A DNA stretch of 64,000 bases, taken from sequence record OQ603353.1, one strand, 5' to 3'. A program made the translations under genes and the position numbers. How positions within the stretch are numbered: the stretch's first letter is position 1; each line of letters starts with the position of its first letter. Under the pieces are notes generated by a model. The model saw only the letters and a program-made list of their open reading frames with translations. It did no database searches and was not told where the DNA came from. This document shows, in pieces, positions 1,565 to 41,826 of the stretch.

Positions 1565-1589
1565 AAGTACCGTCCTGTGGATGTGTCAG

Positions 1590-7653: not shown

Positions 7654-7845
7654 TTATCGTAGTTGTGCAGTGTGCTCAATGCGTTCACGCAGCTTGTCGG
7701 TGTCGAACGTCTGCTCCATCAGCAGCTTGTTGACCCAAAGCTGGTACTCTGTCCGACCGTCTACGTCACGCTTCTTGATGACGTAGTTCTTGCCGTTGTG
7801 CGGCGCCACCTGTTCGGTGACAATCTCCCATGTTACTCCTGCCAT
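7654..7845 (-). CDS. Small hypothetical protein
   Basis: Directly downstream of the E1 gene and overlapping it. Confidence 0.5.
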   Translation of the reverse strand: MAGVTWEIVTEQVAPHNGKNYVIKKRDVDGRTEYQLWVNKLLMEQTFDTDKLRERIEHTAQLR

Positions 7846-8516
7846 GTTACGCTGTGCATTCCCCATTCTTCACCCACGCTTGTCACCACCGTGTTAGGTG
7901 TCGGGCGGCCCATGACGAAATTCATGAACTGCCAGATCATCTGTGACGCGACAATCTGCGCCGTAGCTCCGACACTGAGGGTTGCCCCACAAGCCGCGCG
8001 CTCTACATTGGCGTCGTCGTCATCGAACAGGCCACCAATGTAATTAGTGCGTTGCCATTCCTTGCTGCGATCAAGCAGGAACGAGATTGCATCCCGGGCT
8101 CCCATGCGTCCATCCAGAAACGCACCACCCTCACACGGCAAGTAGTTCTCCGCGAAGGCACGGCGCGATGCCATGTTGTCCACGCATACGAACACGTATG
8201 GAGTGGCCTCAAACCTGGGCTTATTGAGGCGGCGAGGACACGCGCCCACTCGCGTGTCCGAAACTTGACGCAGGCGATCCACCAAGGCAACAGCCTTGTT
8301 CGCCCCCACGTCATCGGGACCGTACAGGCATTGGTTCGGCAGGTTGTGGGATTCCACCACGTCATCATCATAGACAACGAACGGTACACCGATCTTCGAC
8401 AACTGCAACGCTACCGCGCTGCCCAAGGCTCCTGCCCCGACAACCACCGCAGGCGTGCGCTCAGTGGCCTTACTTTTGCTCAGGTCGAAGATACCGGTCA
8501 ATCGAATTTGATCCAT
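7833..8516 (-). CDS. ThiF/MoeB/E1-like adenylyltransferase
   Basis: VVGAGALG nucleotide-binding loop, YDDDVVESHNLPNQ, NKAVAL, VFVCVDN, LDGRMG, and a C-terminal AACG candidate catalytic Cys. Confidence 0.9.
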   Translation of the reverse strand: MDQIRLTGIFDLSKSKATERTPAVVVGAGALGSAVALQLSKIGVPFVVYDDDVVESHNLPNQCLYGPDDVGANKAVALVDRLRQVSDTRVGACPRRLNKPRFEATPYVFVCVDNMASRRAFAENYLPCEGGAFLDGRMGARDAISFLLDRSKEWQRTNYIGGLFDDDDANVERAACGATLSVGATAQIVASQMIWQFMNFVMGRPTPNTVVTSVGEEWGMHSVTWQE

Positions 8517-26949: not shown

Positions 26950-26983
26950 AAAAGGGGCCACCAAGATCGCTCCCGGCAGCCCC
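26950..26983 (-). terminator. Intrinsic terminator closing the modification operon
   Basis: GGGGCUGCC/GGUGGCCCC stem then UUUUCGUUU. Confidence 0.75.
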
Positions 26984-26988
26984 TAAAT

Positions 26989-27837
26989 TCAGCCTAGTTT
27001 GAAGTCGATGCCCACAGCCACCTTGCTAGTGACCGGATGCACGCCACGTAGGACTGAGGAAATCTGCCGTTCAAACAACGGGGCTTCCCAATCCAAGTAC
27101 GTAGTGGTATCACCATGACGGACGACTATTTCCGCATCCTCTAACAGCGGCGCACCTACCAACTCTGCCACGCCTGCTGCATTCGGATTGTACATTGCGG
27201 CTACTTCGATCACGTCATCGAACCCTAGCACTTGAACTTCACCACTCCAATTTACTGGAGTAGTTGCGGCATGGTCTACCTTTGCAGCCACGTCGAAGCC
27301 ACGCTGCCATCCGATGATGCTCATCAGATGGAAGCCTAGATCGTACTTGATTACATGGTTCCATTGAGAACCATCGGTAGGCATGTTGTTGTGGTACATA
27401 GCCAGCGCAGTGATTGGTTCGTGCACGTCTGCCAGTTTGGAATGGTAAATCCATTCGGCGGAAACAAGCACACGATCATCAATCACGTCTGACTTATACG
27501 GCTTCTCACACAGCACGCGAGACTCAGGGAAGCATTGTACGGACTGCCTAACCATCAGGTCATGAGTGCTATCTGGCGTGGCGATGATAATGAGGTCCGG
27601 AGCATTCCACGTACTCATCATTGCGCCAGTCAGTGTTTTGTATACTGGAACCTGACGCTCCAGCACTGCTTCTTCGTAGAACGAACCCCACTGATTAACC
27701 AGCACCGATCTGCTGTAGACTTCACTAGCCTTGGGGTTCACGTCTACGACAAAGGACAGCGTATGTCCGAGATTCAAGGCAGCGATGGCGTGAGCTTTAC
27801 CCACGCCAAGGCCACCTACAATTCCAATGCGCGCCAT
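26989..27837 (-). CDS. Gfo/Idh/MocA-family NAD(P) oxidoreductase
   Basis: RIGIVGGLGVG Rossmann motif, IIATPDSTH, VLCEKP. Confidence 0.85.
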   Translation of the reverse strand: MARIGIVGGLGVGKAHAIAALNLGHTLSFVVDVNPKASEVYSRSVLVNQWGSFYEEAVLERQVPVYKTLTGAMMSTWNAPDLIIIATPDSTHDLMVRQSVQCFPESRVLCEKPYKSDVIDDRVLVSAEWIYHSKLADVHEPITALAMYHNNMPTDGSQWNHVIKYDLGFHLMSIIGWQRGFDVAAKVDHAATTPVNWSGEVQVLGFDDVIEVAAMYNPNAAGVAELVGAPLLEDAEIVVRHGDTTTYLDWEAPLFERQISSVLRGVHPVTSKVAVGIDFKLG

Positions 27838-27840
27838 TGC

Positions 27841-28950
27841 TTAGTTCGGGTAGCGGTCGTTGTCGAGCAACTTGGTCAGGCGAGTGGTAATCGTGTGCTC
27901 AAACGCATTGACCTGCACGAACACTGGGGCCAGCAACACGTCGAACAGAGTGTGGCGTACCCAATCCTTACTCAGGAGTTGGGCTGCATCTTCCAGCGTG
28001 TAGTACAGGTGCTCGTCGCGGTACATGTATGGGTAGCACGCGCGGTTGGGCACTACCGGAATCGCGCCTAGGACCACTGCATCAATAACGCTGTAACCGA
28101 AAGTCTCCAGCGTTGCAGAGCTAAACAGGAAACTCAGTTTCGCCACCTCGGTCCAATACTTGTCCTTGGTATCACATAGGACGAACTCAATACCTGCATC
28201 CACCGCTTCCTGATACAGTGGTGCGGTGTCGAGGGGGACCGGGTGCAGAACGCGGAAGGTGCGGGTGTCGCCAAGACGATGGGCCAGTTCGATGAAGTCT
28301 TCGGGGCGCTTATCCTCTGCCCAACGATGGCTCCAGCCCACGACAGGCTTTGCCTCTTCAGCACGCGCAGTCAGCGAACGGCGCAGCTGCGCAGGGTTGG
28401 TATCTTGTGGGCTAATGACCGGCAGACCAATGACGTTGACGTTGGTGGAGTTTAGTAGGTCCACTCCATAGTCGGTAGCTACGTAGGTTTCGGTGAAACA
28501 ATCCAGCAGGGTTTCTTCGAGGCTGCGTACCCACGAGCCTGCCGAATACAGGAAGTCACCCGGAGTCTCAACGCTGCTATGGAAGAAGCCGGTCAGGTGG
28601 GCCTTGATGCCTGCGCAGTGCATGTGGAACTTGAGCACCGGAACGGCAGGCGACCAACCATCGGCAAAGTAAACCACGTCGCCATCAGCGATGTGATCCA
28701 GCACACCCAGCACACCCTTGCAGAACGATTTGGTCATCGTCTCGTCGGAGTAGAACATGGACTGCGACGACATGCTGTTGAATTCTTCGCCGCTGTTCAC
28801 CTCAACGACTTCAAACTCATGACCGTTAAGGGTCCGAGTCTTGTCTGCTGCGGTTTGGCGGAGGGCGGCGATCACCTTGTTAGTGATCCACTTCTCAGGG
28901 CGGAAGTCCGACTCGGGACTGCGAACTACAATGATCTTCTTCACTTTCAA
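27841..28950 (-). CDS. GT-B (GT4-like) glycosyltransferase with GTDC1/QTMAN-like motifs
   Basis: WSHRWAEDKRPEDF and KDKY...FSSATLETFGYSVIDAVVLGAIPVVPNRACYP...HLY. Confidence 0.85.
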   Translation of the reverse strand: MKVKKIIVVRSPESDFRPEKWITNKVIAALRQTAADKTRTLNGHEFEVVEVNSGEEFNSMSSQSMFYSDETMTKSFCKGVLGVLDHIADGDVVYFADGWSPAVPVLKFHMHCAGIKAHLTGFFHSSVETPGDFLYSAGSWVRSLEETLLDCFTETYVATDYGVDLLNSTNVNVIGLPVISPQDTNPAQLRRSLTARAEEAKPVVGWSHRWAEDKRPEDFIELAHRLGDTRTFRVLHPVPLDTAPLYQEAVDAGIEFVLCDTKDKYWTEVAKLSFLFSSATLETFGYSVIDAVVLGAIPVVPNRACYPYMYRDEHLYYTLEDAAQLLSKDWVRHTLFDVLLAPVFVQVNAFEHTITTRLTKLLDNDRYPN

Positions 28951-29555
28951 TCCTCTTTGAACTTTCGGTGGTGGAGGCTGCGAGTTACCTCAACATGAAG
29001 CGACGGTCCGCGCTCTCCCTTTTCATGCAACACGAACGACTCTGCAATCAGATCGAAGTTGCCGATCATATACATTTCGCGCTCGTAGATTTGCAGGCAC
29101 TTGCTCTTGGCTTTGGTTTCGCTGTAGAGCGTGAAGTCCGGCACCTTATAGTTGAATGCAGGCACCAGCACGGATGGGCGCTCCTTGACTGGCAGCATCG
29201 ACCACGCGAGCATGGTGTGCTTATGTAGCTCCCGATGATGGCGGTGGCCATACTCACCGTTCGGGTTGTGCGTTACGAGGTAGTTGTACCCATTGTGCAA
29301 CTGCTGATAGATGTTCTCCACCAGCAGCGCAGTGTCCTCGGTCAGCGTGCCTTGGTAATCGTCGTCCAACGCAAGCTGGATACCCCTCGATTTCAACACC
29401 TTACAGGCGGCAAGGAATTCCTTGCCGCGTGCAGTGCGATGACCGTAAGTGGCACATAGATCGTGCCACTCGATATGAGGCGTGGCCTGCCGGATGTTGT
29501 GGCCGAAAATGAAACTGTCATCCGGGTGGGCCATTACAATCAGTGCTTTCATCAC
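28947..29555 (-). CDS. PIG-L/LmbE-family N-acetylhexosamine deacetylase
   Basis: MAHPDDS and THNPNGEYGHRHH metal-binding motifs. Confidence 0.85.
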   Translation of the reverse strand: MMKALIVMAHPDDSFIFGHNIRQATPHIEWHDLCATYGHRTARGKEFLAACKVLKSRGIQLALDDDYQGTLTEDTALLVENIYQQLHNGYNYLVTHNPNGEYGHRHHRELHKHTMLAWSMLPVKERPSVLVPAFNYKVPDFTLYSETKAKSKCLQIYEREMYMIGNFDLIAESFVLHEKGERGPSLHVEVTRSLHHRKFKED

Positions 29556-31075
29556 AGTCCTACTAGCGGCGCGTCCTGCATATACTTTACAGGATCGTCC
29601 TTACCAATCATGGCAAACGCGGTTCGCCGCAACTGGCATGGGCCACAGTTTCCGCAATGAAGCTCACCGCCGTGGTAGCAACTCCAGCTAAGATGGATCG
29701 GCGCTTCAAGCAGCAGACCCGTCTGCGCCACTTCATGCTTCATCAGCTTGTCCAGAGGGTTGACCAACTTCGGAGCGGCCTTGGAGCCAATGGCGATGGC
29801 CTTCTCCATGAGGTCGAAGAACTCCTTCTCGTTGTCTCCGAATGCGCCTGCTTCTTCAAGATTGGCGCCGGTGTAGATTGCACCAAAGCTCCACCGATCA
29901 GCATATGCTGCCATCATGGCGACCATCAGGCCATTACGGAATGGCACCCACTCATTCGCGTATTCGATGCCGTCCTTGCCGGTTGCCACTTCCATCGTGT
30001 CGTCCACCAGCGGGTTGCCACCCAGCTGCTTGAGGAAGTCAAGGTCGAAGAACTTGAGGGTGATCGTCTTCCTGGGATGACGTTCAACCAGCGCAGCGTG
30101 GATAGCTGTCACTGCCTCTGTCTCGCGCGTCTGTGCCCGGCAGCCATAATGGAAGTGGGCGAGCACGATATTGGTGTGATCCCGACAGGCGATTTCTGCA
30201 CTAACCGTGCTATCCATACCGCCGGACAGAATCACGATGGCGCTCTCAGGATTGCCACCGTTCGGATCCTTGTCGAAGCGAGTGGTTGCCGCCTTGCCTA
30301 CGAAGAAGGAGTTCCGGTCGTGGTGGCCATTGAACTTCCAAGTCGAGTTGGCGGCGATGTGGAAGTCAGTATACATGCCATCCCGAATCAGTGCACGCGT
30401 AATGGCCTGACGTTCACTGGCGAATACCACCGCAGCGGCGTTTTCGTGGAAGCCAAAGCTAGGGCACACAGCGGAGAGGGGCCGATAGTTGCGGGCGAGC
30501 CACAGCGTATCAGTCTCCACGTCGTAGACCGCTGACGCGACAGAACCGATCAGGCTTTCAAACTCGCCACGCTCAACCGCGTAGGGAATCGCAGCGCTGT
30601 CCACCTTGGTGCGGGAATGTTCCGGGATGAATTGCGCATCGTTGGCGATGACGCCGTTGTGAACAGCGAAATAGCGTTCAGCGGGCCAGTTGGCGTAGGG
30701 CTGAATGTCATCCTCGCGCTGGTCCTGTAGCCATTCAGTAGTCGGCTCGGCTCGGCAGTTTGCGATCAGGGTGAAACTTCTCACCTCGTTCGGAGTCATG
30801 GCGTCGAGGTTGCGCATCATGATCTGCACCTGACTGATTACAGCCAGTGCACGTGCATTGAGGTCAGGATGGGTATCCCGAATCGAACGGAACGACTGAC
30901 GCTGGAATACGCGATGTGTGCTGCCATCAAGCGACGTGATGAAGGCAGCGTAGCCCATTGCATCACGGCCACGCTCGCAACTTTCAACAGCCAGCGTCAT
31001 CAGTGCGTTGAAGACGACACGCTTCTGCTGTGCGTCAGACCAACGCAGGTTATGGACACCGAAAATGGAACACAT
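29552..31075 (-). CDS. queC: Glutamine amidotransferase class II - QueC fusion (Gat-QueC)
   Basis: N-terminal Ntn Cys (MCSIFG), RGRDAMG, NCRAEPT, HNGVIAND; QueC SGGMDS PP-loop, VPFRNGL, NLEEAGAFGDN, Zn site SCY...HCGNCGPC. Confidence 0.92.
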   Translation of the reverse strand: MCSIFGVHNLRWSDAQQKRVVFNALMTLAVESCERGRDAMGYAAFITSLDGSTHRVFQRQSFRSIRDTHPDLNARALAVISQVQIMMRNLDAMTPNEVRSFTLIANCRAEPTTEWLQDQREDDIQPYANWPAERYFAVHNGVIANDAQFIPEHSRTKVDSAAIPYAVERGEFESLIGSVASAVYDVETDTLWLARNYRPLSAVCPSFGFHENAAAVVFASERQAITRALIRDGMYTDFHIAANSTWKFNGHHDRNSFFVGKAATTRFDKDPNGGNPESAIVILSGGMDSTVSAEIACRDHTNIVLAHFHYGCRAQTRETEAVTAIHAALVERHPRKTITLKFFDLDFLKQLGGNPLVDDTMEVATGKDGIEYANEWVPFRNGLMVAMMAAYADRWSFGAIYTGANLEEAGAFGDNEKEFFDLMEKAIAIGSKAAPKLVNPLDKLMKHEVAQTGLLLEAPIHLSWSCYHGGELHCGNCGPCQLRRTAFAMIGKDDPVKYMQDAPLVGL

Positions 31076-31080
31076 GTGGG

Positions 31081-31875
31081 TTACTCCGTGGGGTCGAGCA
31101 AGACCGGAACCTTGCGCTCAAAAGGAATGGGCTTCCACGTCTTCTTGTAGTCGAAGACGGCGAGGCCGAGGTTGAGATACAACACGTTCGCCTTGTAGCA
31201 CAGGCGTAGGGCTTGCAGGAGCATCACGTTCCCGACGGTGTACTCCTTGGCGTATTGGTCACGCAGGAGCAACGTGTTGACCCAGTGATACTCATCGTTC
31301 TCTGGGCACATTTGGAACATGCCAATGCCGCATGGGGTGAACTTGCCATCCTCGCTAGGACGGAAAACCAGCACCACGTCACTGTTGGGAATCAGCGACC
31401 ATGCAGCGATGTATTCAAGGTATGCCACCGCCGTTTCTGTCGCACCTTCAAACGTCATGCCCGGATTGAAGTGTTGCAGGTTCGAGACGATGATGTGGAT
31501 GAGTCCAGCCTTGAACTGGTCAAACTCCCCACCACGCGCGGGATGGAACATGAGGTTGGCCGTGTTCTTCCAGCTGCGCTTCAATTGCGACAGTGATTGC
31601 AGGTGCGCCTCAAAACTGGGACGGCTTGCAATGACACGAACCTCTGGACGCATCGTGTGCGCCAGATTGTCCGACAGGTTCAGCACCTCATCGTAGAAGG
31701 CAGGGAACTCAGTGTCGCCCATAGGGACAAGTATGGTCCCTGCGTCTTCGGTATGGACTTCCTCAACGGTAAAGCCATTCGGTGCGGCGACCGGCTTGAA
31801 GGGTAGGCCCTTATTGCGCGCCAGAACCTCGCGGTATACGCGGTACTTCTCGAAGGCTGCGCGAACGTTACTCAT
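31081..31875 (-). CDS. FemAB/BioF2-like GNAT (Acetyltransf_6-type) paralogue 1
   Basis: FEAHLQSLSQLKR and GNVMLLQALRLCYKANVLYLNLG...DYKKTW; start moved to ATG 31875 (GGAG, overlap). Confidence 0.7.
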   Translation of the reverse strand: MSNVRAAFEKYRVYREVLARNKGLPFKPVAAPNGFTVEEVHTEDAGTILVPMGDTEFPAFYDEVLNLSDNLAHTMRPEVRVIASRPSFEAHLQSLSQLKRSWKNTANLMFHPARGGEFDQFKAGLIHIIVSNLQHFNPGMTFEGATETAVAYLEYIAAWSLIPNSDVVLVFRPSEDGKFTPCGIGMFQMCPENDEYHWVNTLLLRDQYAKEYTVGNVMLLQALRLCYKANVLYLNLGLAVFDYKKTWKPIPFERKVPVLLDPTE

Positions 31876-32911
31876 AAACCCATGCTCCTGCTTGGTAGTA
31901 AGGAGGCCACATTTTCTCTTTGGGGGTGGCCGAACAAATTGCGATACCTGCATACGTCATCGTGTCATTACACACGGGACGCTTGTACTGACTGTAGGTG
32001 TGGCCTTCCACAAAGTCAGCAGCCAGCGTGGTATCAATGATGGCGGTCCCCGTCTCCGGCCGCTGTAGGTAATACTGCACAGCATGCGCCAGAACCGCAG
32101 TGCCCAGCCCATTCGGAGCATCGTAGGTGGAGTCCTTGAAGAAGCCAACGAACACGCGACGATTGACGCGCTTCACAAACGTACCGACTGCCACAAGGCG
32201 CAAGCCATCGTAAACCTTGATGGTGTCGCACCCTGAACCAGCAGCCACCGACATTGCCAGCGGTAGCAGCGAACCTTCCACTACCAACGGATGCCACGTA
32301 GAGCACGTCTCTGCTGTCTGCGCGCTCCAGTGTTCCTGCATCCACTCGGCGATGACTGGAATCTCGTAGTCGAACAAGGGCTCGACCTCAAACGTGAGGT
32401 GCTCGGATACGCGCAGCTTCTGGCGTACCTGTGCTCTACGCTTAGTGGACAGAGACGTGAGATATTCATCCCACGTCATGACACCGGCGCGATCACGATA
32501 CCCTAGGTACACCACGTCCGACTTGAGTGAGTAGATTTCTCGTGGGAAGTCTTCGCCGTATCTATGTGGGCAGTCAAGGGCAGGAGGTGCGACGACTGCA
32601 TTATCCTGCTCAAAGGTTGGGATGGATTGAGACAGGTCGATCAAGGTGTTCTTGATTTGATCGACCGTACCTAGCATGAAGCCGGTTGCCATCCCCATAT
32701 TGGTGAACCCTGCGTACAGGGTTCCGTCCGGGTAAGACTCAACAGCGATTGAGCCGTCCGTGCTCACGTAGAGCGGCTTGTCCGCATAGGAAGGTGCAAG
32801 CTTTCTGCGGAGCTTTACCCACTGTGCTTGCACGTCCTTATCTAGCTCAGGGTAGATCGAGTTTGAACATCCGAAACGTTCAATGTAATGCTCGGCAGTC
32901 ATTACGTGCAT
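31868..32911 (-). CDS. FemAB/BioF2-like GNAT paralogue 2
   Basis: WDEYLTSLSTKRRAQVRQKLR; LGTAVLAHAVQY; YKRP. Confidence 0.75.
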   Translation of the reverse strand: MHVMTAEHYIERFGCSNSIYPELDKDVQAQWVKLRRKLAPSYADKPLYVSTDGSIAVESYPDGTLYAGFTNMGMATGFMLGTVDQIKNTLIDLSQSIPTFEQDNAVVAPPALDCPHRYGEDFPREIYSLKSDVVYLGYRDRAGVMTWDEYLTSLSTKRRAQVRQKLRVSEHLTFEVEPLFDYEIPVIAEWMQEHWSAQTAETCSTWHPLVVEGSLLPLAMSVAAGSGCDTIKVYDGLRLVAVGTFVKRVNRRVFVGFFKDSTYDAPNGLGTAVLAHAVQYYLQRPETGTAIIDTTLAADFVEGHTYSQYKRPVCNDTMTYAGIAICSATPKEKMWPPYYQAGAWVYE

Positions 32912-32913
32912 GG

Positions 32914-33789
32914 TTATTCCTTTGCAGTGTTGTTCAGCAGTGCGTGGCGCAACTTGAGGATGCTTTCGGGATGAGTCAAGTCGCGGTCAGTACGCGCGTG
33001 GAAGAGGGAGCCCCGGAAGGTGCTGTAGCTGACGCCGTATTCCACTGCCGTAACCTGCGCACCCTTGACGTAAGACACCACCGCAGTGTGGAAGGTACGC
33101 GAGAAGTAATCTCGGATGTTCCACATTTGCTTATAGGTGTCATCCCACACAGAGTAGTGCTGGTCCGGTAGCAGATTACTCAGGTCTTCCGGCACGATAC
33201 CAGCAGCGCCGTCGAGGATCAGCAGATACCACTTTTCACGAATACCGAGTTGGGTCAGGAGGTTCTGAGTCAACTCGATGATTTCAGGATTGTTTGGAAC
33301 AACCAGCACGTGCGGTCGCGTGGGAGCGTACAGTTCCCTAGCAGCTTCGATACCTATGACCTTGGCACGACGCTCTGCCATCACAGGGTTAGGTACGAAA
33401 TCGTGCTCGGGCTCAGCGAACTCGTAGCCCCTGCGCGACTGCGGGATGGGCGTTTCCGAATCCAGCAGACGCAGCACGATGGAGGTTTCGGGGCGAATGG
33501 CACACATGGCTTCCAACACAACCTCGGTCATGTTGCGGCCGTAGTCTGCTGCCTGCCATGCAGGACCAACAATCTCATCGCCTTGCAGTTCGACCGTGGT
33601 GCTGCCGATAGCGAAGCACAGGTAGGTCAGCAGTGGAGCCCACGAACTCGGCACACCTTGCAGCGTGTAGTTGCCATCCAGCGATGCTAGATAGGACAGC
33701 GTGTTGACCAGTTCAGGCAGGCTCTTGGAATCCGGACTCAGCTGCGAGGATGCGCCGTCCTCAGTTTGGGAATGAATCTCAATCTTCAT
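32914..33789 (-). CDS. Unknown protein inside the modification operon
   Basis: 291 aa, tightly coupled to both neighbours; no family recognised. Confidence 0.75.
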   Translation of the reverse strand: MKIEIHSQTEDGASSQLSPDSKSLPELVNTLSYLASLDGNYTLQGVPSSWAPLLTYLCFAIGSTTVELQGDEIVGPAWQAADYGRNMTEVVLEAMCAIRPETSIVLRLLDSETPIPQSRRGYEFAEPEHDFVPNPVMAERRAKVIGIEAARELYAPTRPHVLVVPNNPEIIELTQNLLTQLGIREKWYLLILDGAAGIVPEDLSNLLPDQHYSVWDDTYKQMWNIRDYFSRTFHTAVVSYVKGAQVTAVEYGVSYSTFRGSLFHARTDRDLTHPESILKLRHALLNNTAKE

Positions 33790-35416
33790 GCTTCAACCTC
33801 TTGTAGTAGTAGAATGCGTCCGTGCTATCAAGGTCATTACCAAACGAATCTGTCTTGTCATCGTAGTAGCCTACGACAGGCAGGCTCTGCTCAAACCCGA
33901 GGGCACGATACAGGCGCTTGGCAGGATCGTTGGTAACCGAAGTGTGCAAGGCAACGCCATCAAACTCATTCGACAGCAGCGCGAACGCCTTTTGCATCAT
34001 CTGCCTACCGACACCGTGGCCACGCATCTGCTCAGTGACGTACACAAGGTCGATATAGGCGTTCGGATTAAATTGGTTGAAAACAATGTAGCCGATGGGG
34101 TTCCGATACCGCCACCTTGCGACAAGAATCCGAACCCTTCCGCCCTCACGTGCCGTCATCAGGATGTGCGACAGCTGATTGATCGTCTCAAGATCGAAGG
34201 TGTTGAGGTCGTCTTCCCCGAACAGTTCAGAAGTCAGCTTGAGGAACTCAGCCAGCTTGATCTCCGACACGTCGATCTGATCGTTCCACTTGCTGTCCAG
34301 CTTCTTCAACTCCCATCCCTTACCACGGATGTATACCGGAGGTTCAAAGCCGTACTCAGCGCAGTAGTTGCCTGCGCAGAAATCCGAATCCACCACAGCG
34401 TAGTCGAGGGGAACGATGGGCAGTTCAAAGCCTACCGGAATGAACTTTTCCTTGTAGGTACCTTCGGTGTCTAGGTGGTAATACTTTACGTCGAGCGGCA
34501 GTTCTTCCGCAATGAATCGGATCGCCTCGTAGATGGCGAGGAAGCCGATGCGACGCTTCTTGTACTCTTCGTAGCTCACACCCGGCACGGCCAGCTTGTC
34601 CACGTACACAGCGCCACGCACTTCACCGATGTTGGTGCAGATGAGGCGGTTGTCCGCGTCGTAGATATTGAGGACCAACGCATTACGGTCCTCAAGGTTA
34701 TGCAGCATGTTGTTGATGTGGATGATGTTGGTGACGTTATCATCCGAGGTGTAGGTCCACCGCTCAAGGTTGGCGGTGTAGTTCTTGTGGAAGTCAGCAG
34801 ACTTCATCACGTCGCGCAGGCTAACCTGCTCCACCCGAACGCCTTCGTTCAGGCGCATCACAGCACGATAGTTCTCCCGGTTCTTCTTCGACAGGGAGGC
34901 AACGTAGCTTTCCATCGATTCGGGGATGTAGAGGCCATAGGACTTGTCATCCTGATAGCCATACTCACGCGGGTAGATCGGGAAGTAGTTGACGATCATG
35001 CAGGGCGGCAGCTGCTCAAACACGTCATCCAGAAATTCTGGCAGCGCCGGTGGGACGCTGACTTCAAAGTAGCTCGCACCAAACAGGTCAAACTTGGCTT
35101 GCTTGAGGGGATCACGGGTGTTCCACAGATCGTGCAGGATCGTATGGCCTACCATCTGCCCGGTGTTCAGGTCATACACATTCGTAATCACCAGCACGCT
35201 TTGATGCACAAAGTTTGCCAGCAGTACCGAAATGTATTCGTCGTAGGTGGGCAGCAAGTCACCAAAGATGCCCACACCATCAAGTGCTTTGACCCGATGC
35301 AGGTACTGCTCAAACTTTGCCTTCGGGATGAGCTTCACAACGTCAGCGGTGGGTGCGACAACATGCTGCTCGCCGAACACCCGATCAGTGCGAAACTCGC
35401 GCAGTCCGTAATTCAT
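33779..35416 (-). CDS. FemAB-like GNAT paralogue 3 fused to a RimI-like GNAT
   Basis: MESYVASLSKKNRENYR; C-terminal YIDLVYVTEQMRGHGVGRQMM...NDPAKRLYRALGF (acetyl-CoA motifs A and B). Confidence 0.8.
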   Translation of the reverse strand: MNYGLREFRTDRVFGEQHVVAPTADVVKLIPKAKFEQYLHRVKALDGVGIFGDLLPTYDEYISVLLANFVHQSVLVITNVYDLNTGQMVGHTILHDLWNTRDPLKQAKFDLFGASYFEVSVPPALPEFLDDVFEQLPPCMIVNYFPIYPREYGYQDDKSYGLYIPESMESYVASLSKKNRENYRAVMRLNEGVRVEQVSLRDVMKSADFHKNYTANLERWTYTSDDNVTNIIHINNMLHNLEDRNALVLNIYDADNRLICTNIGEVRGAVYVDKLAVPGVSYEEYKKRRIGFLAIYEAIRFIAEELPLDVKYYHLDTEGTYKEKFIPVGFELPIVPLDYAVVDSDFCAGNYCAEYGFEPPVYIRGKGWELKKLDSKWNDQIDVSEIKLAEFLKLTSELFGEDDLNTFDLETINQLSHILMTAREGGRVRILVARWRYRNPIGYIVFNQFNPNAYIDLVYVTEQMRGHGVGRQMMQKAFALLSNEFDGVALHTSVTNDPAKRLYRALGFEQSLPVVGYYDDKTDSFGNDLDSTDAFYYYKRLKHED

Positions 35417-36246
35417 TTCTTCGTTCTCAGGTAACGTGCATGGTTGAATACTTGCGTGGCGTCGAGGGCCTGAATGCCATCAAACAAAGGAAGGTTGGAC
35501 CCAAGGGCATTCGTAGCTGCGTCCTTCTTGATGCGCTCCACCCAATCGCGGAAGTCGAGGCCATCCATATCCATAGCGCCGAGGGCACCGAGGTGTGGGG
35601 CAAACGTTTCCATATCGACAAGGCGCTTGCCCGCCTGACCGGCCCACAGGTCCAGCGCGACCATTGCAGCCTTGGATGCGTTCGGGGTCAGGGAGAACAT
35701 GCTGTCTACGCTAATGTAAGTGGGGAAGTTTAGGCCGAACAGGCCACCTACGATTTCGCCTTCTGCGTTGAGCACTGTGACCGAGTACGCTTTACGTTCC
35801 TTACCATAGTGGAGTGCCTTGTATGCACGCTGAGTAGGAGTATCGAGCCATTGCGTGTACTCGTCTGCATCCTCTTCCTTATCTTCCGGACGCTCAACCG
35901 TAGCGCAGTGGTGAATCACCTTGTCGAAGCCGACGTTCAGCTGGTAGTTCCAACCCTGCTTGCGAATGAACTGCTCGGTAGTCTTGGAAACGTGCAGGCC
36001 ACCAACAGGCAGCACGGCTCGGCGACCGCTGACTTCCCAAATCCATTCGGATTCATCCTCTGTGCCAACGAACCCCATCGGGTGCGCCTGCGCCCTGTCT
36101 GCCAAACCATACAGAAGGTGCGGCGTCATTTCTACGGTCCAGCAGTAGTCGTCATCATCCAGCGGGAAGTGCTCTGCATTGATGTGGCGAACGTCGTTCA
36201 AGTCGTACAGCTTGAACGGAATCTTAGTGTCGCTCGAAGTGTCCAT
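35413..36246 (-). CDS. aat: Leucyl/phenylalanyl-tRNA-protein transferase homologue
   Basis: RAVL..GGLHVSK, FDKVIHHCA, AYKALH, VGGLFG, DSMFS...NASKAA, LVDME...HLGALGA follow the E. coli Aat pattern. Confidence 0.85.
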   Translation of the reverse strand: MDTSSDTKIPFKLYDLNDVRHINAEHFPLDDDDYCWTVEMTPHLLYGLADRAQAHPMGFVGTEDESEWIWEVSGRRAVLPVGGLHVSKTTEQFIRKQGWNYQLNVGFDKVIHHCATVERPEDKEEDADEYTQWLDTPTQRAYKALHYGKERKAYSVTVLNAEGEIVGGLFGLNFPTYISVDSMFSLTPNASKAAMVALDLWAGQAGKRLVDMETFAPHLGALGAMDMDGLDFRDWVERIKKDAATNALGSNLPLFDGIQALDATQVFNHARYLRTKK

Positions 36247-36946
36247 TCAGTTCGTTTCCGTAAAATTCAGTAAGGGTCATACCAAGGTGTGCAGTTTCGT
36301 CAACGGTGTCTGCCTCAATGGAAGCAGAATCCCAAGGAGTGCGCTGAATGAAACTGTTCAGGTGCTTGCAGAGAGCATCGAATGCTTCCCGATTCGTGAT
36401 GAATCGCTTGGCGTGATCGTCACCTTCGCGCCCAGCGTTCTGGATGACCATGACAGGCTCACCCTTGAACCACACGGAAGCCAGCCTCCAGAAGCGGCGC
36501 GGATCGAAGAAGAATTCCTTGAGGACGCGCACTTCAATCTCGGTGTCTTTGTGAAGCGCCTCCATATCGAAGTCGCTGAGTTCTACGTCTAGGCCACCCT
36601 TTAGATGGTTGAAGTAGAAGCCACGCAGAGCGTAAATGGCCGGCTCAACCTTATCGAAGTTTTCGATGGCGTAGACTTCCTCGCAGGTAAAGGGAACCTT
36701 GGCAGCCTCGGCCCTAGCCAGCTGATCCGCCTTGTACTCATTGATGGCGTCTACAAGTTGAGTGACCTCACGGTCCCCCTGTGCACCACCGTCCACCTCC
36801 TCCATCTTGATTTCCACACCGATACTTTTCAGCATGGGCTCAATCTTTACGAGGGCCTGTATGTAGTGCATCGGTCCTAGGCCAGCCTCAATAGCTGCAT
36901 AGACTATGTGGGCAGGCTTGAACACAATCACAGTTTGTTCCGACAT
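36224..36946 (-). CDS. Hypothetical protein, first gene of the modification operon
   Basis: RRFWRLASVWF.GEPVM.IQNAGREGDDH..RFITN motif; follows a CTGTAAATA motif. Confidence 0.75.
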   Translation of the reverse strand: MSEQTVIVFKPAHIVYAAIEAGLGPMHYIQALVKIEPMLKSIGVEIKMEEVDGGAQGDREVTQLVDAINEYKADQLARAEAAKVPFTCEEVYAIENFDKVEPAIYALRGFYFNHLKGGLDVELSDFDMEALHKDTEIEVRVLKEFFFDPRRFWRLASVWFKGEPVMVIQNAGREGDDHAKRFITNREAFDALCKHLNSFIQRTPWDSASIEADTVDETAHLGMTLTEFYGNELNGHFERH

Positions 36947-37033: not shown

Positions 37034-37309
37034 TCAGGAACGACCCGCGAACACAAGGCGACGGCCCGAACCCTTGGGGCGCAGGTTGCCTTCCAATTCG
37101 CGGAAGAGCTTGCGCTCCCCGTTCTTGTTGGATTCAATGCTTGCGGTCGTGCCCTTGGCCGACAGTTCCAGCGCCACCACTTTTCCGCTCCGGGTGGAAA
37201 TCATAGACTCTGCGCCTTCCTCCCAGCCCTCACGAAGACACGCAGGCACCGGGGTCGTAATCACTTCAACCTCGTCACCCAACTTGAACTTGAACGGATA
37301 CAGATTCAC
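37034..37309 (-). CDS. Small SH3/KOW-like hypothetical protein
   Basis: FKFKLGDEVEV...GKVV. Confidence 0.6.
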   Translation of the reverse strand: MNLYPFKFKLGDEVEVITTPVPACLREGWEEGAESMISTRSGKVVALELSAKGTTASIESNKNGERKLFRELEGNLRPKGSGRRLVFAGRS

Positions 37310-37319
37310 GCTTGCTCCT

Positions 37320-37928
37320 TTAGTGTAGATGCTTCTTGCTTGTGGTAGTACCGTCTAGCTTGAATAGGCGGCGTAGAACAGGGCCATCCAGAATGAATGG
37401 GTCAAAGTATTCTGGATCAATCTCGTCCATGTCTTCCTGCGTCATGCCCATTAGCGCAGCATACTCCTCTCGGGTAGGCTCGATGATGGAATCAACATAG
37501 GTGAACAGGTGGTGCGGATGAGTGTCGTCCCCGACCAGCGTTACCAAGCCAGCGGCCTGACTGATACAACTCTCGGGGCCGTAGTGAAGGGAATGCAGCT
37601 TGCGAATCTCTTCCAGCATTTCGTCGCGCTCGTGGCCAGTGCGTGCAGCCAGCTGATTTCGAGTGACGATATACATGGGGTCTTCGGGGCCACGGTCGAT
37701 CTTGAACATGACCAACACATTGACCCGCTGTATTCCGGTTGCTACGATTTGCGCCTTGTTGTTGGAGAGACGCAAGGTGTAGTCATGACCACACACAGGG
37801 CAACTCCATTCCATGATTCCGTTTGCAGGGATCGGAGAACAATCCACTGTAGCCTTCTCACAGTTGAGGCACGTTGCTTCAACCCCGTTAAATACTTTCT
37901 TGGTCGAGGTAGGGGACGACACAAACAC
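37320..37928 (-). CDS. Zinc-ribbon protein
   Basis: CLNC...CPVC. Confidence 0.7.
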   Translation of the reverse strand: MFVSSPTSTKKVFNGVEATCLNCEKATVDCSPIPANGIMEWSCPVCGHDYTLRLSNNKAQIVATGIQRVNVLVMFKIDRGPEDPMYIVTRNQLAARTGHERDEMLEEIRKLHSLHYGPESCISQAAGLVTLVGDDTHPHHLFTYVDSIIEPTREEYAALMGMTQEDMDEIDPEYFDPFILDGPVLRRLFKLDGTTTSKKHLH

Positions 37929-37968: not shown

Positions 37969-39435
37969 TTAGTATTCGTCAGGGACAATATCCGGAGACG
38001 TGGTGGACGGCGGGGTAGTGTCGTCCTCCGTCTTGACACCGAGGCGGTTCAGGACAGCAGCACCCGCTGGGGTGTTGGCAAAGCTTTCAACCATCGCGCC
38101 CATGTTCAGGCCACCAGCAGCGCCGAACAGACCGGAGACCTTGTTGATGCCTTCGGTCGGGGTACCAGTGTTGGCGATGACCTTGACGCTTGCGCCTTCC
38201 AGCGCCTTGGCCTGTGCGATGCCGACTTCCTTGGTAGCGTTGATGCTTTCCACGCTCAGGAGGTACGTCTGATAGCCTTGGTTCTCACCGATTTCCTTGG
38301 CCAGTTCGATCTGAGTGGTGACCGGGGCACGCAGGCGTGCAGTCTCAGCGGCTGCCTCAGCTTCGCCTCGGGCCTGAATACCCTCAGCCTCACGCTGCGC
38401 CTGAGTCAGTGCTGCATCGGCCTCAAGCTCGATCTGACGCTTGTTACCTTCCGCCCGAATAACCTGCGATTCCTTCTGCGCAGTTGCGGCGATCAGGGCC
38501 GTCTTCTGCTGTGCTTCGGCGTTGATTACCGAGGTCTGACGATCTTCCTCTGCCTTGACCACACTCACTTCACGGCGAATGTCAGCGCCTCGCACTTCCT
38601 CAACCTTGCGCACTTCCATTTCGCGGGTCTTGGTGACCGCAGCTTCCTGCGAGACTTCCTGCTGGGTACGCTCCCGAGCAATACCCACAGTCTTTTCCTT
38701 CTCAGCAGTACGCTTGCCAATCGTCTCTTCCGATTCCTGACGGCGCATTTCCACTTCCTGCTGGGCTTCGATTTCCACCAGCGAAGCAGTGCGCAGGTTG
38801 CGTGCGACCTCAGTACGGCTTTCGGATTCGATCTGAGAAATCTTCTTTGCCATGATGTTGGCAATGACTTCCTGACCCGGCGCATCCTTAATGTCCATCA
38901 ACTCGATGGACTTGACGCTCTTGACGCCCCACGCCGGAAGCTGCTGCTGTACGTCCTCAGTGAAAGCCTTACCGAAGGTGCTACGCTCGGTCATGATTTC
39001 GTTAATGTCGTAGGTCGCCAGCATCGAACGCGCTGCACCCTTTACGATGGATTCCAGCTGGGAGGTCAGTTCCTCAAAGTTCTCAACGCTCTGCGCCGCC
39101 ACGTCCGAATCAGCGATCTGGAAGAAGGCTTCCACTTCGATACGGAACGGGGTCCGATCCTTATCGTATGCCTCGTAGTCGTTCAGGCGAACGCTGAACA
39201 TGGTAGTCGGCAGGATGCGGCGAGTCATACCGATGCGCGGGAACCATTCCGGCCACTTGTAGTAGACGTTACCTGCATCCTTGTCCTTGCCGTAGCTGAC
39301 GGTAGCCTTGGCTTGCTGGACAATGTGTACTTCGTTGGTGGGGACAACAGTGCGGCGACCGAATGCCCAAAGGCAAATGATCGCAAGCAGTGCAAGGATG
39401 GCGAGCACTGCGATACCGATGACGATGATTCCCAT
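37969..39435 (-). CDS. SPFH/Band 7 (flotillin-like) membrane protein
   Basis: N-terminal TM, RRTVVPTNEVHIVQ, SPFH core and long A/E-rich coiled coil. Confidence 0.9.
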   Translation of the reverse strand: MGIIVIGIAVLAILALLAIICLWAFGRRTVVPTNEVHIVQQAKATVSYGKDKDAGNVYYKWPEWFPRIGMTRRILPTTMFSVRLNDYEAYDKDRTPFRIEVEAFFQIADSDVAAQSVENFEELTSQLESIVKGAARSMLATYDINEIMTERSTFGKAFTEDVQQQLPAWGVKSVKSIELMDIKDAPGQEVIANIMAKKISQIESESRTEVARNLRTASLVEIEAQQEVEMRRQESEETIGKRTAEKEKTVGIARERTQQEVSQEAAVTKTREMEVRKVEEVRGADIRREVSVVKAEEDRQTSVINAEAQQKTALIAATAQKESQVIRAEGNKRQIELEADAALTQAQREAEGIQARGEAEAAAETARLRAPVTTQIELAKEIGENQGYQTYLLSVESINATKEVGIAQAKALEGASVKVIANTGTPTEGINKVSGLFGAAGGLNMGAMVESFANTPAGAAVLNRLGVKTEDDTTPPSTTSPDIVPDEY

Positions 39436-40069: not shown

Positions 40070-40384
40070 TTAGTCCTCGTTGGCTATCTTGAGTAATACG
40101 TGACCGTGGCAAGGGGCAGGTGCACACCAGCACACCAAGTCCTTGCCTTTCAATCGCTGCTTGATTTTACGCACCATGTTCGGATCAGCGAGCACCCATT
40201 CCTTGAATGCCTGAATCGCCTCATGGCGCGAGGACACACGGAACTTAGCTTGTGTGCCATCTTTACTGCCGAAGGGATTGCCCCACTCAGACGGCCTACC
40301 TATGTAGACAGCACCTTCGGGTGCGTTCCCGCGTCGCTTGTTGTATACCTTTGGTCCCGAAGGTACGTCAAAGAGTTTCTTCAC
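40070..40384 (-). CDS. DUF4326-family protein
   Basis: VYIGRPSEWGNPF...LKGKDLVCWCAPAPCHGHVL; GTGA overlap start. Confidence 0.85.
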   Translation of the reverse strand: MKKLFDVPSGPKVYNKRRGNAPEGAVYIGRPSEWGNPFGSKDGTQAKFRVSSRHEAIQAFKEWVLADPNMVRKIKQRLKGKDLVCWCAPAPCHGHVLLKIANED

Positions 40385-40800
40385 TTGATGCCTACAAATC
40401 CGAGGTAGCGATAGGGAGCTTCCATTCCCCACTTGTCGCACAGGCGAGTAATCATTTCCGTGTAGTGACAGCCATGCTTGGTCTTGAACTTCTGCTCCAG
40501 ATTGTTGGCTATCGCGCGCCATCGTCGGGTAGCCTGCTCGGCTGGAGTGAGGGCTTCCCCGTCCCCTTCGTCGGCATGCTCAGAATCGAGGTCATCGAAC
40601 TCTCCGAGCACATTCTCCCCACTGCCGCTCTCTGCCAAGGATAGAGCCCTACAGATGCCTTCCTCGGTTGCTCTAGCGAGGAGCCAGATGGAATGGTCGG
40701 GGTGGTCATGGGGTATCTGCACCTGTAGTTTCATGCTGGGATTCGTAGAATTGTTGGCGAGTAATCCACTCGCCGTTGTGCCACAGGTAGCCGAGTTCAA
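40381..40800 (-). CDS. Hypothetical protein (start uncertain)
   Basis: Co-oriented ORF filling the gap. Confidence 0.5.
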   Translation of the reverse strand: MNSATCGTTASGLLANNSTNPSMKLQVQIPHDHPDHSIWLLARATEEGICRALSLAESGSGENVLGEFDDLDSEHADEGDGEALTPAEQATRRWRAIANNLEQKFKTKHGCHYTEMITRLCDKWGMEAPYRYLGFVGIK

Positions 40801-40875: not shown

Positions 40876-41826
40876 TCATTTGCGGATACCTACGAGTACG
40901 TTGGCCTTGATACTTTCGAGCACATCCTCATCATCCGTATCGTCTTCATCCCATGTAAGGACGGGATCGAGTTGCTCGAAATCGTTGGCATCGTAATCAC
41001 AACGCCACGCATCGACCTGAGCGAATCCCGCATCGCGCAACATATCCGTTAGCTCCGGTTCAGAGAAGTAGCGCTGACAGAATGGATTCTTGATCTTGAC
41101 CGATACGACCACACGCCCATCGACCTTGATGGAAATGTTACTGAACTCGTCAATGTTGTTAGAGATTGCCCGATCGTAGTACGACTTGACGCGGGCAACT
41201 ACCGTTACATTGGAGTACCGAGTGTTGCTGGCGAGGTTCTTGCTGACCAGCCAGCGGTACATGGGAGTGTAACAGTCTACATGGAATTCTTGGGTGGAGA
41301 CACGTCCATTCATACGTTCATCAGGGGATAGCGCCGTGGCATAGCCATCCGAGCAGAAATCCATGATGAAGATACCACCTTTCTTGGTGGCCGAGAATGC
41401 CGAGTTGATGAAGCCTTGTACGCCAGCGCGAGTGACGATGCCGCCCTTGTCCATATCACATACGGAACTCGGCGAGTAATAGTGGGCGGTCACAATGTCC
41501 CACTGCTGCTTGAAAACGTGCTGCGTAATATCGCGCACTTGGATGATGCCGGGATTGCCTGCGGACAGAGTGCCATCAGTGCCCGAATACTTGAGGCCCT
41601 GCACAGGCCATGCCTTCTTGAAGTAATCGGCATGTTTGCTGTGTGCACCGGAGAGAAGCTCCAGCAGTGAGGATGCGCGCGGACGCATTTGGAATGCGAT
41701 ATGAGCGAAGGCATGCGCCTCCTGCATCTTGTACCCTTCGCTCCGATTGTAGATGGCTTGGTATAGCTCACTGAAATCGTACAGGTGATGCAGCTTCATG
41801 TTGATTGTTTTGCGCGGACCTTTCAT
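40876..41826 (-). CDS. Class I SAM-dependent methyltransferase
   Basis: LYQAIY, LLELLSG (motif I-like), DIT...WDIVT, TKKGGIFIMDF, RYFSEPELTDMLRDAGF. Confidence 0.75.
   Translation of the reverse strand: MKGPRKTINMKLHHLYDFSELYQAIYNRSEGYKMQEAHAFAHIAFQMRPRASSLLELLSGAHSKHADYFKKAWPVQGLKYSGTDGTLSAGNPGIIQVRDITQHVFKQQWDIVTAHYYSPSSVCDMDKGGIVTRAGVQGFINSAFSATKKGGIFIMDFCSDGYATALSPDERMNGRVSTQEFHVDCYTPMYRWLVSKNLASNTRYSNVTVVARVKSYYDRAISNNIDEFSNISIKVDGRVVVSVKIKNPFCQRYFSEPELTDMLRDAGFAQVDAWRCDYDANDFEQLDPVLTWDEDDTDDEDVLESIKANVLVGIRK

Follow-up and report, generated by a model that had tools for sequence, protein, structure and literature searches.

A Xanthomonas jumbo-phage operon combining 7-deazaguanine and aminoacyl-tRNA-type transferase genes suggests an amino-acid-decorated, previously undescribed base

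The 64,000-nucleotide (nt) stretch of sequence record OQ603353.1 analysed here (the window) carries, at positions 31081–36246, a group of transferase genes that includes a homologue of the leucyl/phenylalanyl (L/F) transferase Aat. Over the window, Xanthomonas phage Ep026 (OQ603353, 227 kb) and Ep032 match at 100% identity, and PhiXhv-15 (PV764602.1) is almost the same in sequence; PhiXhv-15 is the sole annotated copy of this genome and the source of the annotation-based gene names used below. Ep026 and PhiXhv-15 are virulent jumbo myoviruses of Xanthomonas hortorum pv. vitians; the Ep032 record (OQ603359.1) is labelled 'Erwinia phage', host Erwinia sp. YA1, yet is 100% identical to Ep026 over the region, which points to an exceptionally wide host range or to a problem with the label. 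A first-pass annotation of the window had picked out the transferases as a battery of related enzymes; the 7-deazaguanine context, which it overlooked, is the key to the locus. Judged from gene arrangement, the transferases, a class-II glutamine amidotransferase fused to QueC (Gat-QueC) and a set of sugar-tailoring genes appear to form a single terminator-bounded operon, given here in the order of transcription with protein lengths in amino acids (aa):

36224–36946, minus strand: 240-aa conserved protein of unassigned function, first gene of the tight block (phrog_8664, E 3.8e-21; same position in related loci L006 and L009)
35413–36246, minus strand: Aat-like (Leu_Phe_trans) transferase, 277 aa, with a variant acceptor/catalytic site (PF03588, E 1.9e-30)
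33779–35416, minus strand: 545-aa fusion of an Acetyltransf_6 (Fem-like) N-terminal part and a C-terminal N-alpha-acetyltransferase-like GNAT (Pfam)
32914–33789, minus strand: ArcS2-like (DUF5591) protein, 291 aa, ArcS signature lost (DUF5591, E 0.052; ArcS model, E 0.028)
31868–32911, minus strand: tandem-GNAT (dupGNAT) protein, 347 aa, resembling aminoacyl-tRNA-dependent transferases (AlphaFold2 model)
31081–31875 (ORF to 31953), minus strand: possible Fem/Acetyltransf_6-like transferase, 264 aa, a weak assignment
29552–31075, minus strand: Gat-QueC, 507 aa (QueC, E 4.4e-49; GATase_7, E 5.9e-8)
28947–29555, minus strand: PIG-L/LmbE-family de-N-acetylase, 202 aa (Pfam PIG-L, 31.2 bits against a cut-off of 28.2; weak MshB matches)
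27841–28950, minus strand: probable glycosyltransferase family 4 (GT4)-like enzyme, 369 aa, annotated 'glycoside transferase' in PhiXhv-15; assignment moderate
26989–27837, minus strand: GFO/IDH/MocA-type NAD(P) oxidoreductase, 282 aa, probably acting in sugar tailoring (GFO_IDH_MocA, E 4.8e-9)
26953–26984, minus strand: terminator-like hairpin at the operon end, with a 14-bp G+C-rich stem, 8 G-C pairs and a T-rich tail, 5 nt past the last gene's stop

The whole region lies on the minus strand, and neighbouring genes overlap by 4 to 23 nt or lie a few bases apart, giving a tight block of overlapping or abutting genes from 36946 down to 26989, within which no terminator of comparable kind was found. 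All genes of the cluster are under purifying selection, with ratios of nonsynonymous to synonymous substitution rates (dN/dS) of 0.10–0.39 between the window and locus L006 (Logan, 35 kb), in which this set of ten genes recurs, in unchanged order and at 40–83% identity. Replication genes (ligase, topoisomerases and helicase) surround the operon.

In the sequences retrieved, the transferase module appears to be very rare but recurrent, occurring in uncultured phages and in Vibrio phage vB_VcorM_GR7B (GR7B); word-based searches of 5.8 billion proteins gave 0–2 relatives for each cluster protein searched. The 8.9 kb recovered of locus L009 contain the three upstream genes, the 545-aa fusion, a methyltransferase-like gene, the ArcS2-like gene, a member of each of the 347-aa and 264-aa families and two QueC genes, and contain no Aat, although the cluster core is kept. 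In GR7B, the cluster adjoins DNA ligase and comprises an ArcS2-like gene, two genes for QueC, members of the 347-aa and 264-aa families, an unknown 697-aa protein, a lysine-2,3-aminomutase-like radical-SAM enzyme and a small GNAT. Loci L012 and L013 also carry a lysine-2,3-aminomutase-like gene, and L013 in addition the same glycosyltransferase, the oxidoreductase and two copies of the 347-aa family. The 347-aa family is thereby found alongside QueC and ArcS2-like genes in L009 and GR7B, alongside the glycosyltransferase and oxidoreductase in L013, and alongside aminomutase-like genes in GR7B, L012 and L013. Aminomutase-like genes with a LAM_C domain accompany this family at L010:15779–16927, L012:5098–6300 and L013:7472–8638, and are absent from the window phage.

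Gat-QueC aligns over 98% of its length, at 33% identity, with the enzymes of phages 9g and FritzHoffmann, which are annotated 'dPreQ0 and archaeosine synthase'. Elsewhere in the PhiXhv-15 genome, the record annotates a QueD-like protein, a GTP cyclohydrolase (FolE) and a radical-SAM 'GTP 3',8-cyclase' that is likely to be QueE. FolE, QueD, QueE and Gat-QueC, with a DpdA-like enzyme of the tRNA-guanine transglycosylase (TGT) superfamily, are the gene set that gives phage 9g its archaeosine-type DNA bases. The 'thiamine biosynthesis protein' of the record was considered as a second QueC and rejected, as it belongs to the ThiF family.

DpdA is regarded as the signature of deazaguanine in phage DNA, and all phage deazaguanine pathways studied so far end in DNA (PMC10516641). 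Searches with phmmer and with a hidden Markov model built from the 9g, Saguaro and V07 DpdA proteins, run against every open reading frame (ORF) of at least 70 aa, returned no DpdA1 or DpdA2, and a Pfam scan of 44 mid-size hypothetical proteins returned no TGT or DUF6610 at E ≤ 1e-3. A TGT-like protein was found only through synteny with the annotated 'TGT domain-containing protein' of GR7B. This 568-aa protein (PV764602.1 11630–13336; 99.6% identical in Ep026) is the orthologue of the GR7B protein (E 7e-101), and the two genes share a neighbourhood that includes a sigma factor and a RecA-like gene. The pair has invariant DSGGFQ and CxCPxC...H motifs; the same region of the Pfam TGT profile matches the GR7B orthologue at E 2.3e-5 and the PhiXhv-15 protein at E 0.07, both below threshold, and the pair used as a profile matches the archaeosine tRNA-guanine transglycosylase 1iq8 at E 1.5e-5 in two collinear stretches. 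On the strength of these motifs and matches the genome has a TGT-superfamily enzyme, and this putative enzyme probably acts on DNA. Its clade includes proteins of Vibrio phages GR7B and GR11A, nine Pseudomonas putida jumbo phages, Phage NCTB, Burkholderia phage BCSR5 and Achromobacter phage Motura.

With the dG+ pathway of phage 9g and the Queuovirinae (FolE, QueD, QueE, Gat-QueC, DpdA), the window phage thus shares a full-length Gat-QueC homologue, the encoded FolE, QueD and QueE, and a TGT-superfamily protein. It differs in that its TGT-like protein, 568 aa long, is far from DpdA1/2 and unlinked to the operon, and in that its Gat-QueC is embedded with nine tailoring genes unknown in described deazaguanine phages.

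The 291-aa protein bears on the same pathway. ArcS adds lysine to the nitrile of preQ0 (PMC11298593), and the phage core-only form, ArcS2, yields dG+ (PMC10516641). The window protein is linked by phmmer (E 2.7e-12) to its GR7B homologue, GR7B_00119, which scores 28.2 bits against DUF5591; the L009 homologue scores 24 bits (E 3.8e-5; cut-off 26). PDB sequence and profile searches with this family gave nothing or chance matches. As with archaeal ArcS and the ArcS2 of Vibrio phage nt-1, a putative DUF5591-type protein is present, here adjacent to QueC, but the signature PC-x3-KPY (in full PC-x3-KPY-x2-S-x2-H), intact as PC-x3-KPY in L009 and GR7B, is replaced in the window and L006 by P-N and a six-residue deletion. 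The signature is lost exactly where QueC carries a GATase domain (window, L006) and kept where QueC is plain (L009, GR7B). This fits the published view of ArcS and Gat-QueC as interchangeable for amidine formation, and looks like a functional hand-over; the window copy, it suggests, is a relic or has been put to other use.

Among the candidate Fem-like proteins, the 347-aa protein has good fold-level evidence, the N-terminal domain of the 545-aa protein moderate evidence and the 264-aa protein weak evidence. HMMER, run over all 1.84 billion representative proteins, found only six real relatives of the 347-aa protein, an IMG/VR scan found none, and PDB sequence and profile searches with its family gave nothing or chance matches (neuroglobin, flotillin). 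The 1211-aa protein P0007 matches the family profile in nine short stretches at profile positions ~203–236 (E 1e-12), probably a repeat or compositional artefact. The AlphaFold2 model of the 347-aa protein, built from a seven-sequence alignment (predicted local distance difference test score (pLDDT) 76, predicted template-modelling score (pTM) 0.79), has as its best PDB matches in Foldseek the lysyl-phosphatidylglycerol synthase (L-PGS) 4v36 (E 2.8e-9) and FemX (E 3.5e-8), followed by MprF, Sbb17/Sba18, FemA and alanyl-phosphatidylglycerol synthases (A-PGS). These matches, which include 4v36, 1xf8, 5vrv, 9wqx and 1lrz, extend from E 1e-9 to 1e-5 with TM-scores of 0.36–0.55. Ranks 1–27 are occupied by FemX/FemA, L-/A-PGS and MprF, Sbb17/Sba18 or uncharacterised DUF2156-type chains, namely 5vrv (DUF2156 domain of a putative lysyl-phosphatidylglycerol synthase) and 2hqy; acyl-CoA tandem GNATs enter the list at rank 28, and L/F-transferase itself appears at 1e-3. 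The double-GNAT folds anticipated by the first-pass annotation are thus borne out for the 347-aa protein, with its FemX and L-PGS matches, and are only suggested for the N-terminal domain of the 545-aa protein, which was modelled poorly (pLDDT 47.6).

Residues invariant in the 347-aa family include, among others, Y150, L151, L154, K157, R159, Y309, K310, R311, N315, P337, Y339 and W344, so that the helix motif ([YH][LV].SLS.[KL][KRN]R) and tail pattern (PP.Y...[GA]W) reported earlier are real features of this family. The helix motif is followed by 5–7 Lys/Arg in ~16 residues, modelled as helices 147–168 at the start of the second GNAT domain, and a Tyr-Lys (Y-K) pair is invariant in each candidate Fem-like family. 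From the model we infer that the K/R-rich helix and the Y-K pair match the basic tRNA-binding helix and the catalytic Lys (FemX K305) of the Fem/aminoacyl-phosphatidylglycerol synthase (aaPGS) class. The likeness to FemX/FemA and MprF (aaPGS) lies in the tandem GNAT predicted by the model, in a putative interdomain basic helix and in a conserved pairing of an aromatic residue with Lys; against it stand the lack of detectable sequence similarity, TM-scores of only 0.45–0.55 and a context that is neither membrane nor peptidoglycan.

The 545-aa protein matches Acetyltransf_6 with 27.2 bits (cut-off 22) over residues 178–305. The RimI-like acetyltransferase previously noted as an extra domain is a real C-terminal GNAT (Acetyltransf_1, E 1.7e-14, residues 429–508; rimI model, E 3e-9, below its cut-off), and the best PDB sequence matches of the protein are the N-alpha-acetyltransferases Naa30 and Ard1. 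Since the model of the N-terminal domain, built from three sequences, is of low confidence, its fold matches to FemX, Sbb17/Sba18, ATE1 and tandem GNATs (TM 0.2–0.3 to FemX/Sbb17) are only suggestive; a tRNA-type transferase is plausible here.

The ORF at 31081–31953 encodes 290 aa, as annotated in PhiXhv-15, and the true start is probably at 31875, giving 264 aa and an 8-nt overlap with the upstream stop; this shorter start is favoured by the database copy P0012 (264 aa) and the L006 homologue (256 aa). The 264-aa protein (dN/dS 0.39) has no relative besides itself in the word-indexed protein database and matches Acetyltransf_6 only at E 0.14, at the C-terminal Y-K motif. Two of the five family members (window, L006, L012, L009 and GR7B_00116) match Acetyltransf_6, below threshold, at a C-terminal Y-K-K-x-W motif, which weakly suggests a Fem-like transferase.

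The strings quoted in the first-pass annotation (three copies of the helix, VDSMFS and LVDME) are all present on the minus strand, in genes that lie at the coordinates given there. The helix occurs at residue 114 of the 290-aa ORF, residue 147 of the 347-aa ORF and residue 168 of the 545-aa ORF; the 291-aa protein is not among the three proteins named for it. The tail said to be shared by two proteins is literal only in the 347-aa protein, the 545-aa tail having one extra residue between Y and GW. Paralogy of the three proteins, asserted in the same annotation, is not established by sequence, as the blastp, phmmer and hhalign scores are marginal. In pairwise phmmer comparisons the 347-aa and 545-aa proteins meet at ~E 0.01 and the 264-aa protein matches neither; blastp among the cluster proteins is likewise only marginal. 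Alignment of the three small families with hhalign gives E 0.002–0.2 (E 0.04–0.13 for the 264-aa family against the other two), collinear, with helix paired with helix and C-terminal Y-K with Y-K. The helix motif alone is neither diagnostic nor above chance, since the profile of the 347-aa family also meets a short YL.SL..K.R string in neuroglobin and flotillin. Of the four tRNA- or thioester-dependent transferases that had been proposed, the Aat-like and 347-aa proteins are supported, the 545-aa protein is plausible and the 264-aa protein is weak.

The Aat-like protein contains PF03588 at residues 62–227 (106 bits against a gathering score of 22.7) and falls short of the NCBIfam equivalog TIGR00667 (83.3 bits against a cut-off of 143.55). 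It has N- and C-terminal extensions relative to E. coli Aat, its gene overlaps both neighbours, by 4 and 23 nt, and an IMG/VR scan with it found no relatives. In the HMMER alignment to E. coli Aat 2z3k (E 4e-15), VDSMFS at residue 180 pairs with GESMFS and LVDME at residue 209 with LIDCQ, so that the S-M-F-S core and D186 are retained and the differences are G155V, E156D, C187M and Q188E. The suggestion that the catalytic D/Q pair is altered was half right: Q188 has become E, and D186 is kept. The corresponding positions were compared across 80 bacterial Aat genes from species-representative genomes, a narrow taxon sample (mostly Chitinophagaceae and Acinetobacter, some Bdellovibrionales and others) collected with a scan pattern that allowed D or E at position 156, so that the residue there was not forced:

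Position G155: G in 78 of 80 bacterial Aats, V in the phage
Position E156: E in 79 of 80, D in the phage
Position D186: D in 79 of 80, D in the phage
Position C187: C in 74 of 80, M in the phage
Position Q188: Q in 79 of 80, E in the phage

The variant residues, with the retained D186, recur in the 80%-identical L006 homologue, and the dN/dS of the gene (0.105) is the lowest of the cluster. E156 and Q188 of Aat are said to hold the acceptor's cationic N-terminal residue in place (PMC4964394); in the phage protein both positions remain or turn acidic. The Leu/Phe pocket residues M144, F153, L170, F173 and I185 align with phage L, I, M, A(?) and V, with an alignment gap near residue 170. Because the pocket positions appear hydrophobic and the acceptor positions acidic, the enzyme probably uses the same type of donor as Aat and a different but still cationic acceptor. 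The PF03588 domain, D186, the S-M-F-S core and probably a hydrophobic aminoacyl pocket are shared with Aat, whereas the four substitutions, the terminal extensions, the score below the equivalog cut-off and an operon context other than proteolysis set the phage protein apart. A shift of acceptor to an operon-made amine, on either a sugar or a base, one of two options raised at first pass, fits the changes at E156 and Q188, their conservation in L006, the purifying selection and the coupling with the Gat-QueC operon.

The window glycosyltransferase has no Pfam match; two of three members of its family match Glycos_transf_1 weakly (best E 0.0065), its homologue in L013 is found at E 4.6e-87, and the family, searched against the PDB by sequence and by profile, returned either no match or matches due to chance (chance matches across searches included a Mur ligase). 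The oxidoreductase (dN/dS 0.19) is kept beside the glycosyltransferase in L006 and L013. In the mycothiol and bacillithiol pathways (MshA–D, BshA–C), a GT4-type transferase and a PIG-L deacetylase are likewise followed by attachment of an amino acid to the freed glucosamine amine and by a GNAT cap; there the amino-acid step is ATP-dependent (MshC/BshC), not tRNA-dependent, and the sequence matches are only weak.

Further genes travel with the module from outside the tight block:

37034–37928, minus strand: two small conserved upstream genes, encoding 91 aa and 202 aa, the latter with an N-terminal zinc ribbon (homologues upstream of the cluster in L006 and L009; weak Zn_ribbon match)
40876–41826, minus strand: class-I S-adenosylmethionine (SAM) methyltransferase-like protein, 316 aa (PDB profile matches)

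The 316-aa protein matches the SAM methyltransferase 1wzn at E 0.033 and amino-sugar N,N-dimethyltransferases at ~E 0.2. Its gene lies inside the cluster in L009 and beside the 347-aa family in L012 and L013, and is also carried by the P. putida phages of the TGT-like clade. It was considered as a DpdA and rejected, given its resemblance to class-I methyltransferases. Just upstream of the operon are genes for an SPFH/Band-7 membrane protein (488 aa; 37969–39435, minus strand) and a DUF4326 protein (40070–40522, minus strand).

Farther off in the window, an acyl carrier protein (ACP) gene is present at ~1298–1585 (minus strand); in GR7B the ACP gene sits two genes upstream of the TGT-like gene. 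At 7833–8516 (minus strand), a ThiF-family E1-like adenylating enzyme, the protein annotated 'thiamine biosynthesis protein', adjoins an 892-aa protein (8529–11207, minus strand) with no Pfam match, and the two may be a separate conjugation or counter-defence pair. Outside the window, the Pfam scan of 44 mid-size hypothetical PhiXhv-15 proteins (loci L001–L005) gave single matches to Tad3 (anti-Thoeris) and Acb1 (anti-CBASS) and to NADAR, ADP-ribosyltransferase exoenzyme, SprT-like and spermine/spermidine synthase domains. The window contains no tRNA gene and the genome only a tRNA-Asn, so that a dedicated phage donor tRNA is not supported.

The streptothricin/BD-12 family offers the nearest chemical parallel to this combination of genes. 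In BD-12 biosynthesis, the Fem-like enzymes Orf11, Sba18 and Sbb17 use Gly-tRNA to aminoacylate the amino-sugar amine of streptothrisamine, which has a guanidine aglycone. Streptothricin itself carries beta-lysine derived from lysine aminomutase. The parallels are the tandem-GNAT fold, with 9wqx, 9wqw and 9wqy among the best matches of the 347-aa protein, and the set of amidine/guanidine aglycone, amino sugar, aminoacyl group and N-acetyltransferase, with a lysine-2,3-aminomutase-like gene in the phage relatives. The differences are a sequence identity of 11–15%, an aglycone that would here be 7-deazaguanine, probably in DNA, several transferases in place of one, and a phage in place of an actinomycete.

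On balance, the sequences, the fold model and this analogy give about an even chance that these genes form the tailoring half of an operon for 7-deazaguanine hypermodification, in which tRNA-dependent transferases would aminoacylate an amine on the base or on its amino sugar. The parts are observed; from them we infer an order of steps. FolE, QueD, QueE and Gat-QueC would make the deazaguanine base (preQ0 or G+), which the TGT-like enzyme would insert, most likely into phage DNA, leaving an inserted base with an amidine or related group. The GT4-like enzyme would put an N-acetylhexosamine on the base side chain, and the PIG-L enzyme would deacetylate this sugar to give a free amine. To this amine the tandem-GNAT and Aat-like enzymes would add amino acids one by one from host aminoacyl-tRNAs, the Aat-like enzyme probably adding a hydrophobic residue beside a cationic group. 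The N-alpha-acetyltransferase-like GNAT would then acetylate, and so cap, the new N-terminus, and the oxidoreductase and methyltransferase-like protein would tailor the sugar or the amine. The resulting base, bulky and glyco-aminoacylated, would shield the DNA from host nucleases. We put forward more tentatively, as distinctly less probable than the general assignment, that the virion DNA of this phage lineage contains an archaeosine-type 7-deazaguanine to which an amino sugar and a short aminoacyl or peptidyl chain, itself N-acetylated, are attached; FemX/MprF-like and Aat-like enzymes would build this chain from host aminoacyl-tRNAs, working on the DNA or on a precursor of it.

Several observations weigh against a hypermodification operon of this kind. 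The TGT-like gene lies 94 kb from the operon, outside the window, its score is below the Pfam gathering threshold, and by sequence its substrate could be DNA, tRNA or a free base. The glycosyltransferase assignment is weak, and the ArcS2-like protein, having lost the ArcS signature motif, may be inactive. Sequence homology among the three Fem-like candidates is not significant, and two of them, the 545-aa and 264-aa proteins, have no confident fold. Relatives with no sugar genes (GR7B, L009) must use another acceptor amine, which makes the order of steps guesswork; in these phages an intact ArcS2 may supply the amine by attaching lysine or beta-lysine. In a term search, the paper on the PhiXhv phages (PMC13340338) proved not to mention queuosine genes, restriction or these transferases.

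Two rival explanations, both improbable and to much the same degree, accept part of this scheme. In the first, the same enzymes build a free, streptothricin-like deazapurine-aminosugar-peptide metabolite whose target would be the host or a competitor. The genes present parallel those of streptothricin/BD-12 from the aglycone, amino sugar and deacetylase to the tRNA-dependent aminoacylation and N-acetyltransferase, with an aminomutase in the relatives, and the TGT-like gene is very divergent and lies outside the operon. Yet a TGT-superfamily protein is present and conserved in related jumbo phages, the operon sits among ligase, topoisomerase and helicase genes, and the phage deazaguanine pathways studied to date, with DpdA as their signature, all lead to DNA (PMC10516641).

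The second rival concerns the donor: the tandem GNATs would be ordinary N-acyltransferases using acyl-CoA or acyl/aminoacyl-ACP, like MshD and the clavulanate tandem GNAT, and at most the Aat-like enzyme would use tRNA. Fold resemblance does not separate aminoacyl-tRNA from thioester donors, a further point against the scheme above; acetyl-CoA tandem GNATs (VipF and the clavulanate protein 2wpw) are among the fold matches at E 1e-5 to 1e-3, Acetyltransf_6 leaves the donor unspecified, and the phage encodes both an ACP and a ThiF-like enzyme. In the 347-aa model, however, users of aminoacyl-tRNA come first, with E-values leading by 3–4 orders of magnitude; a strongly basic helix and the Y-K pair are retained in the family, as in tRNA-dependent members; and the ACP and ThiF genes lie at a distance of 20–30 kb and show no synteny with the module in relatives.

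Remodelling of the host envelope, through aminoacylated lipid or peptidoglycan and deacetylated sugars and serving, for example, superinfection exclusion, is considerably less probable still. It would account for L-PGS and FemX as best structural matches, for GT4 and PIG-L enzymes, which also act on envelope precursors, and for the SPFH membrane protein just upstream, but no transferase has a membrane domain, the genes lie in a replication block, and they are tightly coupled to Gat-QueC and the ArcS2-like gene, with recurrent QueC linkage in relatives.

Rewiring of host proteolysis, the other option of the first-pass annotation, in which the Aat-like enzyme would add Leu/Phe to protein N-termini and feed or divert the ClpS/ClpAP N-degron pathway while its neighbours are unrelated, is the least probable of all and finds no support in the context: a genuine Leu_Phe_trans domain with D186, a hydrophobic pocket and a still acidic acceptor site are set against four changed near-invariant Aat positions, a score under the equivalog cut-off, a gene overlapping both neighbours within a terminator-bounded operon, the persistence of the L009 cluster core with no Aat, and no ClpS-like gene noticed nearby.

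DNA hypermodifications are a main route by which phages escape restriction and CRISPR, and a source of new nucleic-acid chemistry. To our knowledge, the eight known phage 7-deazaguanines all have small side chains, none bears a sugar or an amino acid, and none uses aminoacyl-tRNA. The enzyme classes and the phage deazaguanine pathways described here are each known; their combination appears to be new, and no description of a deazaguanine operon with tRNA-type transferases was found in the published literature searched. The gene content of the operon suggests an amino-acid-decorated, previously undescribed base, and there is a substantial chance that it represents a new class of DNA modification chemistry. 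Read more modestly, the operon still yields a new and very rare clade of tandem GNATs, the phage-specific 347-aa family, which has no annotated member. Relatives with an ArcS2-type protein and a plain QueC, set beside those with Gat-QueC and no ArcS signature, offer a natural comparison that may show an exchange of the amidine-forming step. Virion DNA with the amino-sugar and aminoacyl base put forward above would be the first case of tRNA-dependent DNA hypermodification and of a non-protein acceptor for an L/F-transferase homologue. If the operon works as its parts suggest, the phage deazaguanine family would extend to glyco-aminoacyl bases, with aminoacyl-tRNA diverted to the tailoring of nucleic acid, and the L/F-transferase fold would gain a new class of acceptor.

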